From the sequence record LC727701.1: a stretch of 64,000 nt of DNA. One strand, 5' to 3'. Each line of letters begins with the position of its first letter. Position 1 is the stretch's first letter. Of the stretch, positions 49,992-61,405 are shown one piece after another. A program made the position numbers and the translations under genes. The notes below the pieces were generated by a model. The model saw only the letters and a program-made list of their open reading frames with translations. It ran no database searches and had not been told where the DNA came from.

Positions 49992-50360
49992 GTGATGCAA
50001 TGTTTAACACACGTAATGAAGTTAGTGGCCGTATTAAGTACGTTGTTATACTTATCAAACCCACTAGCTGCATCGTTGGTAGTTGACGAGAATTACTGTA
50101 ATGGTGTTGCACTTATAGCACATGCCACAGCAGAAGCACGTCAGCGTAAAACACCCATTTTACAATGGGAAGAAAACCTACGATCCCTAAAAGGGTACGG
50201 CGTGAAGAACAAAGATAACGTTCTTTACAATGTTCTCCCAGCAGCAATTAAAGAGGTGCACGTTGTGTATTCACGTAGACAAAGCCCACGTGATGCATAC
50301 GTTACATCATTTAAAACCTGTATGGATAACAACTACGGTAAAGCTGTGGTTGTAAAATAA
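49992..50360 (+). CDS. Secreted helical protein with two Cys
   Basis: Signal-like KLVAVLSTLLYLSNPLAA; YCNG..AEARQRKTP..FKTCM. Confidence 0.7.
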   Translation: MMQCLTHVMKLVAVLSTLLYLSNPLAASLVVDENYCNGVALIAHATAEARQRKTPILQWEENLRSLKGYGVKNKDNVLYNVLPAAIKEVHVVYSRRQSPRDAYVTSFKTCMDNNYGKAVVVK

Positions 50361-50362
50361 AT

Positions 50363-50392
50363 ACCAGCCCTTCGGGGCTGGTTTATTTCATC
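50363..50392 (+). terminator. Intrinsic terminator, UUCG loop
   Basis: ACCAGCCC-TTCG-GGGCTGGT then TTATTT. Confidence 0.85.
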
Positions 50393-50395
50393 TAG

Positions 50396-50713
50396 ATGAG
50401 AATCTGTGGGTTGCAAATGTATAAAGTATTTGTTATATCAATGATAACACTAACAGCTATATCAACATGTGTAACTTTCATTATTAATATAAAAAATCAT
50501 TATATTCACTGGATGGGTGTTTATAAGGTTAGATATGTATTAGATAAAATGCCCAATGGCATAAGTTATTTTTTCTATCAAAATGCTGTCCAAGACATTA
50601 TAGATAAAGAATCATCTAAAATAACAAATCAACATATTTTTACATCTTTTATTTACGATATCAACTCATTGATTATATTAAAATGTAATAATAGGGAAAC
50701 AGCAAATGAATGA
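50396..50713 (+). CDS. Small membrane protein (~98-105 aa)
   Basis: Hydrophobic VFVISMITLTAISTCVTFII segment. Confidence 0.55.
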   Translation: MRICGLQMYKVFVISMITLTAISTCVTFIINIKNHYIHWMGVYKVRYVLDKMPNGISYFFYQNAVQDIIDKESSKITNQHIFTSFIYDINSLIILKCNNRETANE

Positions 50714-54065: not shown

Positions 54066-54266
54066 ATGGATCGTCTTGATGAAAGAATCGCATTCAGTGT
54101 AAGATCGTACAAAATTTTCAATGCTCTCGCCAATGGCCGAGTTCGAGCATTGATTATTAACTTTAAAGATGGTAAGGGCACGATCATGTCTATTAGCGAT
54201 GATCGCCGCCATGATAAACATCTCTGGTTCAACTGTGGACTAGTAGACAATCCAAGGATCAAGTAA
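54066..54266 (+). CDS. Hypothetical protein (66 aa)
   Basis: AAGGA RBS; TAATG coupling to thyA. Confidence 0.7.
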   Translation: MDRLDERIAFSVRSYKIFNALANGRVRALIINFKDGKGTIMSISDDRRHDKHLWFNCGLVDNPRIK

Positions 54267-55336
54267 TGGAACAATATCTTAATTCAATTCGTTTAGTTAA
54301 AGAACTCGGTGTACATAAAGGTGATCGTACTGGTACTGGTACTCAGAGCATGTTTGGTCAACAAGAACGTTATAGTTTACGTAACAACGTTCTACCCGTA
54401 GTAACTACTAAGAAAATTCATCTTCCATCTGTTATCCATGAATTATTCTGGATGCTTTCTGGTGATACTCGTGTAGATTATTTAATTGAAAATGGTGTAC
54501 GCATTTGGAATGAATGGGTTAAACCAAATACTGCGGTATATCGTGAGTTAAATCAAGAAGAGCTTGACTCAGCTATTCTAAAGAAAGTTGGTGGTCCATT
54601 TGCCCTTTATTTTCATTGTCTAGATGATGAAGTAATCATTCAGACTAGAGATGAGTTTGAAGCTTCTTTAAGTGGTGCTGAGATATTTAGCTTTTGGAAT
54701 CAATATCCAACCATTAATATCGAAGCTACCCATGTAGTTGGTGTTAACGCCGACCGCTGGAAGTTAGTATCTACTCTAGATTTCGATGAAAGTGTGACAC
54801 CAGAACTAATTAAATATGAATATGGTAAACGACTATATAAATTGCTATTTGGTGTTAAGCCTCTAAAACTCATCGGGGGTGATCTAGGTGCCGTTTACGG
54901 TAAGACATGGCGTGATCTCGAAGATACCCGTGTGATCCCAAAACACGAGTGGGCTGTTTACGAGGCACGTGGCTTTGACTTCGTAGTTGATATTCCAGGT
55001 ACTTACATGGAGAATGATCGGTGTGTTGTAACACGTCGTATTGATCAAATTCAAGACGTGATTGATCAACTTAAGACAAACCCTGATTCCCGTCGAATCA
55101 TCGTTTGTGCGTGGTCACCGCAACTCGTTGATGAACAGGCGCTCCCACCATGTCATAGCTTCTTTCAGTTCTGGACTCGTGAACTGACGCTAGAAGAACG
55201 GTATGACTGGGTCAAACTTAACGACACTGAAGCTCAACGTATTTTCCTTGAAGGTGCGCAACCGGAAACTGATCACGCACTGTGGGATAAACTTGGTGTT
55301 CCTAAACGTGCATTGAGCTGCCAGCTCTACCAGCGT
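54266..55336 (+). CDS. thyA: Thymidylate synthase, exon 1 (357 codons)
   Basis: DRTGTGT, TTKKIH, WNEW, GDLGAVYG, SRRIIV, ALPPCH, LSCQLYQR; ends at CGT before the intron. Confidence 0.95.
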
Positions 55337-56426
55337 TAAATACTAGCGCCTTCTAGGAGCAATCCTAGTCGAATAACCTATCTAAACGGGGAAACTCTCT
55401 ATGAGACAATCCCGTGCTAAATTGACTACGGTCATAAATGCCTAACGACTATCGAAACCACTCTGAGAAGAGGAAGGGAGTAGAGTAGGACCAAGTGGTC
55501 CGAAAAGGTAGGGGTCTCTTTTTAAGAGATCGTGATATAGTCTGTCCTGCATGGAGACATGCAGCGGTTTACTTAATGACTCCGCCAGATAAGGAGGGTG
55601 TTATTAATGACGTAGCTTATGTGTATTGCCTATTCACCAAAGAAGGAAAGGTATATGTCGGAAGTGCGCGAGATTTAGTTAAGCGCGTTCAACGACATTT
55701 CAGAGACCTTAGTAATTCCAAGCACCATAACTACCCATTACAACAAGAATACGATAACGGTGAAAGATTCTCGTTAAAGTACTATCGTTGTGAAAGTCGG
55801 GAATCAGCATTTACACTCGAACAGATGTGGATAACCAAGCATGAAGAAGAAGGTAACCTTCTTAATATTGGTAGACACTCCAAGGGTGGTGATAACTTAA
55901 CCAGGCATAACCTCAAAGAACAAATCATCGAGAAGCGGAGTGATACAATACGTATCAGACTTGATGAGATTGGAGCCGAGGCTCGTCAGGAAAAGTATGG
56001 TCGACCAGGTGAGCAGAATGGGATGTATGGTCGTACTCACACAGAAGAAGTTAAGGTAGCTCTATCCGAGTTACACACGGGTAACACTTACCGTCTTGGC
56101 ATTAAAGCTAGTGATGAGACAAGAGCCAGGATGTCGGAGATAGCTTCTCAGAGAACAGGCGAACGTAATCCATTCTACGGTAAAACACATTCCGAAGAAA
56201 CCAGAAAAAAGTTGGCGGATAACAAACGCGGTATAAAGCCAACTAACTCAAACAAACTTGAAGTGGACGGTGTTGTTTATTTATCCCAGGCCGATGCAGC
56301 TAAGGCTCTCGGAGTATCACAGGGTACAATAACATACCGAATTAACAGCAAGAATCCAAAGTATTCTGGTTATAAAGTCATTTAAGTAAACGGCTCAGGA
56401 TTAACGACCCTGGGTGAACATAAGAG
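55337..56426 (+). mobile_element. Group I (IA2, T4 td-like) self-splicing intron, 1090 nt
   Basis: P1 with U-G at the 5' splice site; P2 CTAGGA-GCAA-TCCTAG; core CTATCTAAACGGGGAA..GACAATCCCGTGCTAAAT; P7 GACTA (55447)/TAGTC (55538); P9 CTGCATG-GAGA-CATGCAG; 3' end GATTAACGAC..GAACATAAGAG; splicing restores LYQR|SVDTFLGKPFN. Confidence 0.95.
55576..56385 (+). CDS. Intron-encoded GIY-YIG homing endonuclease (I-TevI/I-BmoI-like); start codon uncertain
   Basis: AYVY-x9-KVYVGSARDLVKRVQRHF catalytic domain; two NUMOD3-like repeats (GEQNGMYGRTHTEE, GERNPFYGKTHSEE); C-terminal HTH (SQADAAKALGVSQGTI). Confidence 0.9.
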   Translation: MTPPDKEGVINDVAYVYCLFTKEGKVYVGSARDLVKRVQRHFRDLSNSKHHNYPLQQEYDNGERFSLKYYRCESRESAFTLEQMWITKHEEEGNLLNIGRHSKGGDNLTRHNLKEQIIEKRSDTIRIRLDEIGAEARQEKYGRPGEQNGMYGRTHTEEVKVALSELHTGNTYRLGIKASDETRARMSEIASQRTGERNPFYGKTHSEETRKKLADNKRGIKPTNSNKLEVDGVVYLSQADAAKALGVSQGTITYRINSKNPKYSGYKVI

Positions 56427-56729
56427 AGCGTCGATACTTTCTTAGGAAAACCCTTTAATATCACGTTCTACAGTCTGCTGACCCATATGTTAGCTAACCA
56501 AATGAATATGGTAGCTGAAGAGTTTATCTGGACTGGTGGTGATGTACATATTTACTCTAACCACCAAGAACAAACCGATCTTCAATTAACTCGTGAACCG
56601 AAGGTTCTACCTACCATTCGTTTTAAAGAAGAAGCTATTGGTAAAGATATTCGGGAAATTGGTGTAGATGATTTTGTTATCGAGAACTACGAATATCATC
56701 CACACATTGCTGGTAAAGTTGCTGTCTAA
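56427..56729 (+). CDS. thyA: Thymidylate synthase, exon 2 (100 aa)
   Basis: SVDTFLGKPFNITFYSLLTHMLA, GDVHIYSNH, YHPHIAGKVAV; in frame with exon 1 after splicing (457 aa total). Confidence 0.95.
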   Translation, partial: SVDTFLGKPFNITFYSLLTHMLANQMNMVAEEFIWTGGDVHIYSNHQEQTDLQLTREPKVLPTIRFKEEAIGKDIREIGVDDFVIENYEYHPHIAGKVAV

Positions 56730-56762
56730 CATAAATGCCTCCCTTCGGGGAGGCTTTATTTC
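56729..56762 (+). terminator. Intrinsic terminator, UUCG-loop family
   Basis: 34 bp identical to 21624-21657. Confidence 0.85.
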
Positions 56763-56836
56763 CCTTGGAGAAATTCGATGTTCATGTATCTGGATATCGG
56801 TAAAGAAGAGAAATTTCGAATGATTAAGGTGACCAC

Positions 56837-57673
56837 ATGATTGATCCACGACATCCAGTTAGCGATGAGATGCGCGCAATCATCGATGCTGAACTTAATC
56901 GCATCGAAAAGAAATATGGTGTAAAGATTATTTATGCTTGTGAGTCCGGTAGTCGTGGATGGGGCTTTGCTTCAACCAATAGTGACTATGACGTTCGTTT
57001 CATTTACGTTAACCATCCGAGTCATTATGTTCGTGTGGATAATGAAGCACGTGATACTATTGAAGAGATGGTGTCTAAAGAACTAGACCTAGCTGGTTGG
57101 AGTATCACTAAGACTCTTCAGCTTGCTTACAAGTCTAACCCCACTCTCTTGGAATGGCTAAACTCCCCAATCGTTTACCGTAAGGTTGATCGGGACTACA
57201 AGTTAATCCGTGATGCTGCGCTAAAGCACTTCATCCCTGAATCGAGTTACATGCATTATATCTCGATGGCCAAACAAACCAAAATGCGTTGGTTGTCAGA
57301 TGAGAAAGTCCGGATGAAGAAATACTTCTATTCTCTTCGTCCTCTGTTGGCTGCAATGTGGGTCCGTGAAAGTCTGGAACATCCACCGATGGTATTCCAT
57401 GATCTACTGCCTCTTCTAACAGATCCTATCCTTTATAAACGTATCCAAGAACTGGTTAATGATAAGGTTGGGGCTACTGAACAGGATCTGATAGATCGTT
57501 GCCCTATATTAGATCAGTTCATCGATTTTCAATTGAGTCGTGAGAAACCAGACTTCGGTAAATACGAACGTCCGGACATCTATGCACTTACCGATCTAGC
57601 CTGGCATTTTGTTGACCAGTACAAGATCGACACATTCGCGAAACTACAGGGCATCGAACGAAGAAAATATTAG
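56837..57673 (+). CDS. Pol-beta-superfamily nucleotidyltransferase, YcgL/RlaP-like
   Basis: ACESGSRGWGFASTNSDYDVRFIY, DLAGW, KSNPTLLEWLNSPIVY, KKYFYSLRPLLA; AAGGTG RBS. Confidence 0.88.
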   Translation: MIDPRHPVSDEMRAIIDAELNRIEKKYGVKIIYACESGSRGWGFASTNSDYDVRFIYVNHPSHYVRVDNEARDTIEEMVSKELDLAGWSITKTLQLAYKSNPTLLEWLNSPIVYRKVDRDYKLIRDAALKHFIPESSYMHYISMAKQTKMRWLSDEKVRMKKYFYSLRPLLAAMWVRESLEHPPMVFHDLLPLLTDPILYKRIQELVNDKVGATEQDLIDRCPILDQFIDFQLSREKPDFGKYERPDIYALTDLAWHFVDQYKIDTFAKLQGIERRKY

Positions 57674-60508: not shown

Positions 60509-61405
60509 ATGAATAATCTACAAGTTAATACCACTATTAAAGAATTACATAAACTTTTAATCTGTAATATTATTGATGGTAAACTAATTGAATATAATGA
60601 TATTGTGAAAGAACTGAAAATTACTAATGATGAATTAGATAATCTACTAATAGCTATTTCAAAGCTATCTGATACACCAATTAATAATATCTTTAAATCA
60701 CTTTCACTAGCAATTGATCTACGTACAATTACATCCGTCATTGAAAAACTTAGTAATTCTACGAAACTATCTAAAAAAGAAATCCAGCTAGATCTGTTAA
60801 CTAGGTTAGGAATAAAAGATAATTATTTTTCGAATAGTTTTACCAACGTGTATCATGAACTAAGTGATATTATCAAAAAGCTTGAATATAGTGATAAACT
60901 ATATCAATCAGATTATCAAAACTTTATTATTGATAAAGTAACTAGTCATTTTAAAGATGTATTATATTCAGCTGGTTATGCAATCAATGATATTTATAAG
61001 TACACTGATTCTAAAGTAGTTAATGTAGATGAAAATGGACTATTGATAGGTATGAGCATTACCAATTATGACTTCCATAATGAGGACGAACCAATTAGAA
61101 CTATTGGTTTTTCATTAATTGATGAAACTAAGGGTTGTGTTGGAAAATCTGAAACTATTAAAAAGTTTGATGTTGAATATTTTCTTAATGCAATGGATAC
61201 TATCAATATTAACCCTGCTGTTATTATTTTTTCAAATCAGTATCGAGAAAAAGACTTAGCCATTCATAATGCTATCATGAATGAATTTAAGGTGAACAAG
61301 ATTTCAAATAATACACGTGACAATATAGTATCTTATCATACTGTCATGATGGGGCATAACTGTATTATCTCATTTAATCACAATGGGTTCCTATTGAAAA
61401 TTTAA
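60509..61405 (+). CDS. Hypothetical low-GC protein (298 aa)
   Basis: AAGGT RBS; very AT-rich codons. Confidence 0.7.

Follow-up and report, generated by a model that had tools for sequence, protein, structure and literature searches.

The sequence analysed here is a stretch of 64,000 nucleotides (nt) from record LC727701.1, one strand (hereafter the window), and its thymidylate synthase gene, thyA, is interrupted by an insert of 1,090 nt. We put the probability at roughly 85% that this insert is a self-splicing group I intron which carries its own homing endonuclease and is mobile among phikzviruses. Splicing, cleavage and homing are what we infer from four features seen directly in the sequences, namely the anatomy of the insert, structural covariation, a presence/absence polymorphism and mosaic flanks. 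The locus (54266-56732) matches Pseudomonas phage NK1 (LC727701.1), a member of the genus Phikzvirus, at 100% identity, and the NK1 record labels it as four hypothetical proteins. At split thyA genes, other GenBank records list two separate 'thymidylate synthase' coding sequences (CDSs) or hypothetical proteins, and some name the open reading frame (ORF) of the intron 'homing endonuclease' and the flanking pieces thyA_1 and thyA_2.

When 54266-55336 and 56427-56729 are joined, the result is a single open frame of 457 amino acids (aa) that reads LYQR|SVDTFLGKPFN across the junction. The Pfam family Thymidylat_synt is divided between the two pieces, the upstream one matching profile positions 1-156 and the downstream one 169-266. 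The joined protein is 68.5% identical to the ThyA of phage phiKZ, colinear with it and without a gap over the junction, and it is also gap-free over the junction against the spliced Td of the T4-like phage RB6. An earlier note on this DNA had proposed the junction CGT|TAA...AAGAG|AGC, restoring this same junction reading, and both boundaries (55336/55337 and 56426/56427) hold in the sequence, with the intron's 3' end reading AACATAAGAG up to 56426. The doubt expressed in that note that reference phiKZ has the intron was justified, since the phiKZ thyA (PHIKZ235, 1,467 nt) is uninterrupted.

An Rfam scan, suggested earlier as a check, gave a match to Intron_gpI (RF00028) at 55327-55564 on the + strand, with 69.4 bits against a gathering score of 50 (E = 1.6e-15). 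It is the sole Rfam match within the window and spans the full model (positions 1-253), which ends at P9. When the endonuclease encoded in the insert was searched against 5.8 billion proteins, the hits were the phikzvirus enzyme itself and then proteins of Logan, ENA and JGI assemblies that share 50-69% identity with it. All seven close homologues that were looked up (P0002, P0003, P0004, P0006, P0008, P0010 and P0013) sit inside a split thyA; DNA was compared for six of these loci, P0013 being left out, and the ORF is placed after P9 in all six. The metagenomic thyA introns (L014, L097, L098, L099, L100 and L101) share the site and the P9.1-ORF architecture of NK1, and their endonucleases are 56-69% identical to the NK1 enzyme. 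Each contig that reaches the 5' junction (L014, L097, L099 and L100) has CAGCGU| there, and the residue after the junction Ser varies among the metagenomic relatives (SVD, SCD, SGD, SAD). The ThyA of L014, the one compared, is ~52% identical to phikzvirus ThyA and has phikzviruses as its best matches in the phage collection, so the metagenomic carriers would be uncultured phiKZ-like phages. Searching IMG/VR with the endonuclease yielded only relatives at <=42% identity, which were left out of the covariation analysis; the relatives used for it are from Logan/ENA assemblies.

A consensus fold computed by RNAalifold from NK1 and its relatives, an ORF-less td intron and the T4 nrdD intron yields P1, P2, P3, P4, P5, P6/P6a, P7.2, P8 and P9, and in 21 of its 52 pairs both bases have changed with pairing retained. 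P7, a pseudoknot and so outside what RNAalifold predicts, was placed by its homology with td; it is invariant and therefore gives no covariation evidence either way. The insertion between P7 and P3' (P7.1/P7.2), typical of IA2, aligns with its td and nrdD counterparts. Judged by its sequence, the intron is thus a group I intron of td/nrdD type, subgroup IA2.

The predicted P1 has a U.G wobble at the 5' splice site (U55336.G55346), and the exon contributes four of its bases. Exon CAGCGU is invariant in the six family members in which the 5' junction is present (NK1, SL2, L014, L097, L099 and L100), the L098 and L101 contigs being cut off at the 5' end and excluded from this comparison. In the thyA pre-mRNA, the guide UAGCGC would pair with the last four exon bases, GCGU, leaving the wobble at the cleavage site, and free guanosine would attack after U55336. 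A short P10 (AG with CU of L1) would then align the 3' exon, and the exons would be ligated after the terminal G56426 to give an intact 457-aa ThyA. The Ser codon at +1 covaries with the L1 bases beside the guide, CUA|GCGCC occurring with AGY and AGA|GCGCC with UCN, as a short P10 predicts.

Past P9 the elements follow in the same order as in td: P9.1, P9.2 with the loop AUUAACGAC, and GAACAUAA..G. P9.1 is extended in NK1 relative to td, and its loop holds ~790 nt with the ORF. It is the top-ranked inverted repeat in the insert, with 15 base pairs (bp) and one bulge, and its duplex energy is -16.5 kcal/mol versus -4.9 +/- 2.2 for shuffled arms. The stem of ~15 bp including the ORF stop, described in the earlier note, is therefore confirmed; it additionally holds an in-frame ATG (55576-55578) which that note had missed. 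P9.1 is retained in all eight family introns at 14-17 bp with compensatory changes, among them the double changes GACU/AGUC (NK1), GACGC/GCGUC (L014) and GACAC/GUGUC, UUUAC/GUAAA and UUUAU/AUAAA, and UUGUAU/AUACAA (L101). Duplex energies in the family range from -14.5 to -21.1 kcal/mol versus shuffle means of -4.0 to -5.9, a gap of ~4 to 8 shuffle standard deviations, although in L100 the best of 300 shuffles (-14.2) nearly matches the observed energy. A chance repeat is ruled out by the shuffle controls together with the compensatory changes. P9.2 has 7 pairs, none of which is broken in eight sequences, and 6 of the 7 show compensatory changes. The coordinates of all elements are collected in Table 1.

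Table 1. Features of the NK1 thyA locus (window coordinates), with their characteristics and the evidence used to place them.
Feature	Position	Strand	Characteristics	Evidence
thyA exon 1	54266..55336	+	357 codons; ends CTC TAC CAG CGT (Gln-Arg at end)	ORF list, Pfam, colinear with PHIKZ235
Predicted group I intron, 1,090 nt	55337..56426	+	starts UAA (in-frame stop right after exon 1); terminal G	Rfam RF00028, frame restoration, 12 phage records
P1	55333..55349	+	exon GCGU and intron UA (55333-55338) with guide UAGCGC (55344-55349)	RNAalifold consensus, 6 and 8 sequences
P2 and catalytic core overall	55353..55564	+		Rfam model alignment, consensus fold
P2	55353-58/55363-68	+		Rfam model alignment, consensus fold
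P3	55377-82/55507-12	+		Rfam model alignment, consensus fold
P4-P5	55387-55415	+		Rfam model alignment, consensus fold
P6/P6a	55416-55441	+		Rfam model alignment, consensus fold
P7	55447-51/55538-42	+	GACUA/UAGUC	homology with td
P7.1/P7.2	55453-55501	+		Rfam model alignment, consensus fold
P8	55513-18/55526-31	+		Rfam model alignment, consensus fold
P9	55547-53/55558-64	+		Rfam model alignment, consensus fold
P9.1 5' arm	55567..55581	+	GUUUACUUAAUGACU; holds in-frame AUG 55576-55578	inverted-repeat ranking, compensatory changes
Predicted homing-endonuclease ORF in L9.1	55576..56385	+	<=269 aa from AUG 55576, 254 aa from GUG 55621; stop TAA 56383-56385	Pfam, TIGR01453
Small hairpin pairing Shine-Dalgarno AAGGAGG (55591-55597) with upstream CUCC/CCGCC	55580..55598	+		predicted in all 8 family members
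P9.1 3' arm	56376..56391	+	AGUCAUUUAAGUAAAC; holds ORF stop TAA 56383-56385	
P9.2 hairpin	56393..56415	+	GCUCAGG/CCUGGGU; td-like loop AUUAACGAC	
3' terminal segment	56416..56426	+	GAACAUAAGAG, terminal G; td counterpart GAACAUAAUG	
thyA exon 2	56427..56729	+	100 codons and stop; starts AGC GUC GAU (Ser-Val-Asp; DNA AGC GTC GAT ACT)	Pfam, alignment with phiKZ and RB6 Td

The intron ORF contains an N-terminal GIY-YIG domain (PF01541), a linker with two NUMOD3 motifs (PF07460) and a C-terminal helix-turn-helix (HTH) DNA-binding domain (I-TevI_DNA-bd, PF20987). It scores 103.8 bits against TIGR01453, 'group I intron endonuclease' (cut-off 56), and its product matches the I-TevI structures 1I3J, 1MK0 and 1LN0. 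The enzyme is 33% identical to I-TevI, 37% to the intron enzyme of Bacillus phage LY2 and 21% to I-TevII. In an alignment with I-TevI, Y17, Y27, E76/E82 and N97 do not vary, and R37 and H41 hardly do; these positions correspond to the Tyr, Tyr, Arg, His, Glu and Asn for which catalytic roles are described in I-BmoI (PMC3161791). The ORF is accordingly predicted to encode a GIY-YIG homing endonuclease of the I-TevI/I-BmoI type.

A survey of thyA in relatives, proposed in the earlier note, uncovered presence/absence at one exact site, all within the genus Phikzvirus: 12 of 47 Phikzvirus records have the 1,090-nt intron (NK1, T2P, U1B, U5, phi9_PA9, PA02, KEN51, OMKO1, fMGyn-Pae01, KoombaW1 and SL2, the last in two records) and 35 have an uninterrupted thyA. 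Among NK1, T2P, KEN51, OMKO1 and KoombaW1 the intron differs at 0-2 of its 1,090 positions; the SL2 copy has 23 differences. The thyA exons of the same intron-plus phages are mosaic, with identity falling to 23-50% per 60-nt window. The closest pair is instructive: in an exon 1 of 1,164 nt, the intron-plus phage KoombaW1 and the intron-less KoombaW2 show five differences only (-405, -7, -4, -3 and -1), and they differ at every position from +1 to +6. NK1 and OMKO1 have the same exon 2 as KoombaW2 apart from +1 to +6 and two or three distant sites. The uniform intron, the mosaic exons and the KoombaW1/W2 differences argue that the intron and ~13 nt of exon (-7 to +6) moved jointly into differing thyA backgrounds.

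Six intron-plus alleles read directly have CAGCGT|AGYGTC and three intron-less alleles read directly have CAAAGA|TCTTGT. In the other six intron-plus records the match to the window runs through the junction, with 96-98% identity overall, and in all 35 intron-less records the junction is of the intron-less sequence type (>=96% identity); in the alleles examined, the association between intron and junction type is, at the sequence level, complete. P1 cannot form on AAGA, and co-conversion of the flanking bases would therefore be required for a spliceable allele. On the modelled pairings, the changes at -4, -3, -1, +1 and +2 are explained by P1 and P10, and the other flank changes, including Cys to Val at the second exon 2 codon, look like hitch-hikers. 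Taken together, these patterns indicate that the intron has probably spread recently among about a quarter of the sequenced phiKZ relatives and is still mobile or was so until recently.

If it works like I-BmoI and I-TevI, the GIY-YIG/NUMOD3/HTH enzyme would bind exon-2 DNA beside the insertion site, where the sequence is identical in intron-less alleles from +7 onward, and would cut near the Arg codon. Repair from an intron-plus genome would then copy the intron with the ~13 nt of flanking exon needed for P1 and P10. Cleavage by I-BmoI depends critically on a G at -2, in the middle of the Arg codon (PMC3664794, PMC3161791), and the intron-less alleles retain this G (AGA). In the intron-plus alleles, position -2 holds A or C throughout the eight NK1-family introns, which matches, by analogy, the discrimination of I-BmoI against its own intron-plus allele, where this base is likewise reported not to be G. 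Had an intron-less allele carried the intron-plus junction, it would have pointed to the cognate homing site or to exact loss of the intron; the corresponding query, TAYCARCGTAGYGTCGAYAC, had no match in IMG/VR, and its three matches in JGI metagenomes were due to chance and unrelated to thyA. Environmental sludge and wastewater libraries hold the intron-plus allele, and one run has the SL2-type 3' end (A56423G, C56429T), so that both the NK1-type and the SL2-type variant circulate in the environment.

The T4 and Bacillus ThyA introns with their GIY-YIG endonucleases are the textbook system for intron homing; the T4 td/I-TevI comparison was read here from the T4-like phages RB6 and GRNsp7. In NK1 the intron separates the Arg codon of YQR|S from its Ser codon (CGT|AGC). 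RB6 td reads TAT CAA CGA TCA GTA GAT GTT TTC TTG GGT|intron (YQR SVDVFLG|LPFN), and alignment with it places the NK1 site exactly 21 nt (7 codons) upstream of the T4-type td site, the distance that had been claimed. In the thyA of Bacillus phage vB_BceH_LY2 (Bastillevirinae) the junction is ATG CGT|intron|TCA AAT GAT, the same Arg|Ser junction as in NK1. In the I-BmoI substrate oligonucleotide (PMC3664794), nine randomised bases separate the critical G (at -2) from C ATG GCC TTG GGA AAT CCC TTC AAT, which implies that the B. mojavensis intron would also sit at the Arg|Ser junction. LY2 and I-BmoI thus both agree with the earlier assignment of NK1 to a Bacillus-type (I-BmoI/beta22) site.

Segment by segment, from the 5' end to P6, from J6/7 to P9 and from P9.2 to the 3' end, the identity to NK1 is 74%, 66-67% and 71% for td, 67%, 70% and 62% for nrdD, and 80.5%, 62% and 60% for LY2, which places the NK1 fold in the td/nrdD family and its guide region nearest to the Bacillus-phage thyA intron. 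The description of the core as td-like is therefore a loose one: the IA2 fold is of td/nrdD type, and the 5' third (P1-P6, including the guide GCGCC) is nearer to LY2 (80.5%) than to td (74.4%). The T4 td intron resembles that of NK1 in its host gene, its IA2 fold with P7.1/P7.2, its P9.2 loop, its 3' end GAACAUAA and an in-frame stop directly past the 5' splice site, and I-TevI has the same combination of GIY-YIG, NUMOD3 and HTH. Unlike NK1, td is inserted further downstream (FLG|LPFN), carries its ORF in P6 rather than P9.1, and uses the guide/P1 pairing GGGU/GCCU. The LY2 intron shares with NK1 the Arg|Ser site, the pairing of exon GCGU with guide GCGCC, the P3' motif GAAAAGGUAGG and the architecture of its enzyme; it differs in having its ORF in P6, and the Bacillus systems belong to Gram-positive hosts and their phages. 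The T4 nrdD (sunY) intron is like NK1 in placing its ORF past P9, in the base of the stem (GUUUAU...AUAAAC-GG; GUUUAC...GUAAAC-GG in NK1) and in having P9.2 next, and its J6/7-P9 core is 70% identical. It lies in another host gene, has another P9.2 loop, and its enzyme, I-TevII, lacks the I-TevI-type C-terminal domain in the alignment.

These sequences of nrdD, RB6 and LY2 bear out the statement that the NK1 ORF sits in P9.1 as in sunY/nrdD, and that the td ORF is in P6. Since ORF positions differ in similar introns at one site, it is reasonable to infer independent invasion by the ORF. In the NK1 intron, an insertion site of Bacillus type, a td/nrdD fold and an ORF position of nrdD type, each of them already known, come together in a new host group, as a third combination of the three in nucleus-forming Pseudomonas jumbo phages. 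Another such phage, PhiPA3, has a group I intron with a homing endonuclease in gp210, and the homologous phiKZ gene is without the intron (PMC11620839). Unlike the NK1 case, gp210 concerns a virion RNA polymerase gene, an HNH nicking enzyme and a different intron, and its competitive effect was shown by experiment (PMC11620839).

Expression of the endonuclease appears to be restrained. The ORF lies in the long P9.1 loop, and the Shine-Dalgarno hairpin is predicted in 8/8 introns, with CUCC or CUUCC as the upstream partner, a loop of AGAUAA in seven and AGUAA in L101, and wobble or compensating variants such as GGGGG with CCUCC in L097; T4 intron endonucleases likewise have sequestered ribosome-binding sites (PMC2988022). 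With the ribosome-binding site locked and both ends of the ORF within the stem, synthesis of the endonuclease would probably be low or come late in infection, and translation through the ORF would be in competition with the RNA fold on which splicing depends. In 4/8 introns the stem AUG (55576) is in frame, in three it is frameshifted by an indel of 1 nt that lies between AUU and the Shine-Dalgarno sequence, and in one it is absent. An in-frame AUU (55603), 4-5 nt past GGAGG, is present in all eight introns and an in-frame GUG (55621) in six. Third-position codon variation suggests that translation may already be under way just after AUU.

Several observations weigh against an intron that is both spliced and mobile. 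P10 has no more than 2 bp and is shifted by one base. The endonuclease has no single defined start, with AUG 55576, AUU 55603 and GUG 55621 as candidates, and AUG 55607, ideally spaced from AAGGAGG, is out of frame (AUG ACG UAG in NK1), such a well-spaced AUG opening a two-codon AUG-ACN-UAG ORF in 7/8 introns. Across the 12 junction bases (-6 to +6), 9 differ between the intron-less alleles and the intron flanks, and with -7 included the count is 10 of 13, so that the intron-less alleles might be poor endonuclease substrates. When spliced joints were sought in public runs (one sludge and one wastewater RNA library, and one run of unknown type), only unspliced contigs over both splice sites were found; these environmental contigs neither support nor refute splicing. 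Finally, the phiKZ long-read transcriptome showed no splicing at three other predicted phiKZ introns, so that an Rfam match in phiKZ-like phages is not proof of activity (PMC10914365).

The absence of spliced reads from the environmental runs and the three silent phiKZ introns would be explained if the insert were a degenerate intron or a free-standing endonuclease cassette that is not spliced, thyA being a split gene or pseudogene and the phage using two ThyA fragments or the host thyA. Annotation of the locus in GenBank as two 'thymidylate synthase' CDSs or as hypothetical proteins is in line with this. We nevertheless consider it highly improbable, given that all core helices are intact with covariation, that the U.G wobble and the terminal G are present, and that both exons are open and conserved, in 6/6 intron-plus phages joined and translated as well as in metagenomic relatives with both exons. 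Intron-plus alleles strictly preserve the exon bases that serve P1 and P10 alone, and the break falls inside the conserved YQR|S motif, which from general knowledge of ThyA makes two functional fragments unlikely. The intron might instead be spliced and no longer mobile, its endonuclease being inactive, unexpressed or unable to reach DNA in the phage nucleus, and its distribution the product of ordinary homologous recombination among co-infecting phikzviruses. The start codons fit such a history, as no canonical one is conserved, and so does the sequestered ribosome-binding site. Moreover, phikzvirus thyA is highly mosaic away from the intron too, which points to frequent general recombination, and in nucleus-forming phages the nuclease must be imported to reach its target (PMC11620839). 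We still judge loss of mobility to be unlikely: the ORF is open and its catalytic residues are kept across relatives at 50-69% identity, implying selection on the protein, and a near-identical intron in very different exon backgrounds, with transferred tracts down to ~13 nt, is expected of a break at the site rather than of random crossovers.

Further Intron_gpI matches, at 75-92 bits in NK1, phiKZ and SL2, lie outside the window: those in NK1 (LC727701.1) are at 61057-61378 and 75303-75531, and those in phiKZ (AF399011.1) at 50168-50489, 65391-65617 and 186396-186717. They are probably the predicted introns around PHIKZ056, 072 and 179 which were unspliced in the long-read study (PMC10914365). 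The number of extra group I introns differs between phages, with two in NK1, three in phiKZ and three further ones in SL2. The usual name gp71-73 for the subunit of the non-virion RNA polymerase of phiKZ would point to splicing of the intron around gene 72.

A spliced and mobile intron could also serve as more than a selfish element. One extension of this reading, which we regard as doubtful, is that the endonuclease enters the phage nucleus by import and cuts thyA in rivals that lack the intron, acting as a weapon between co-infecting phiKZ-like phages. CAAAGA|TCTTGT would in that case represent the preferred target or else an allele that escapes cutting, and synthesis of the enzyme would be throttled by the hairpin-locked site and the out-of-frame start-stop AUG, the real frame being read from the near-cognate AUU.

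A literature search for a thyA intron in phikzviruses found no description of one, an absence that is no proof of its being unpublished. The NK1 element is a typical phage group I intron with a predicted GIY-YIG homing endonuclease, and its main value is as a natural system for homing and intron biology and for the correction of annotation, in NK1 and at several other GenBank thyA loci. A natural intron-plus/intron-less polymorphism exists within one genus, with the model phage phiKZ lacking the intron and the isolate OMKO1 carrying it, so that homing, co-conversion and phage competition are testable with existing isolates. In nucleus-forming phages transcription takes place within a protein shell and translation outside it (PMC12908238), which makes splicing without coupled translation and nuclear import of the endonuclease concrete questions.

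Beyond the intron, the locus varies in other ways. Phikzvirus ThyA is unusually long (457-488 aa), with inserts within the usual ThyA fold. In exon 1 (window 54500-55330) these inserts are hypervariable among otherwise near-identical phages, with 23-50% identity per 60-nt window, indels of 6 to 93 nt and flanks above 95%, a pattern that suggests cassette-like recombination or diversifying selection. The stretch downstream of thyA (window 56730-56840; compare L002:2968-3510) also differs: in phiKZ, KEN51 and KoombaW2 the gene PHIKZ236 (408 nt) lies there. It is absent in NK1, OMKO1, SL2, T2P, KoombaW1 and Churi, in which thyA is followed directly by the YcgL-like nucleotidyltransferase gene (window start 56837).

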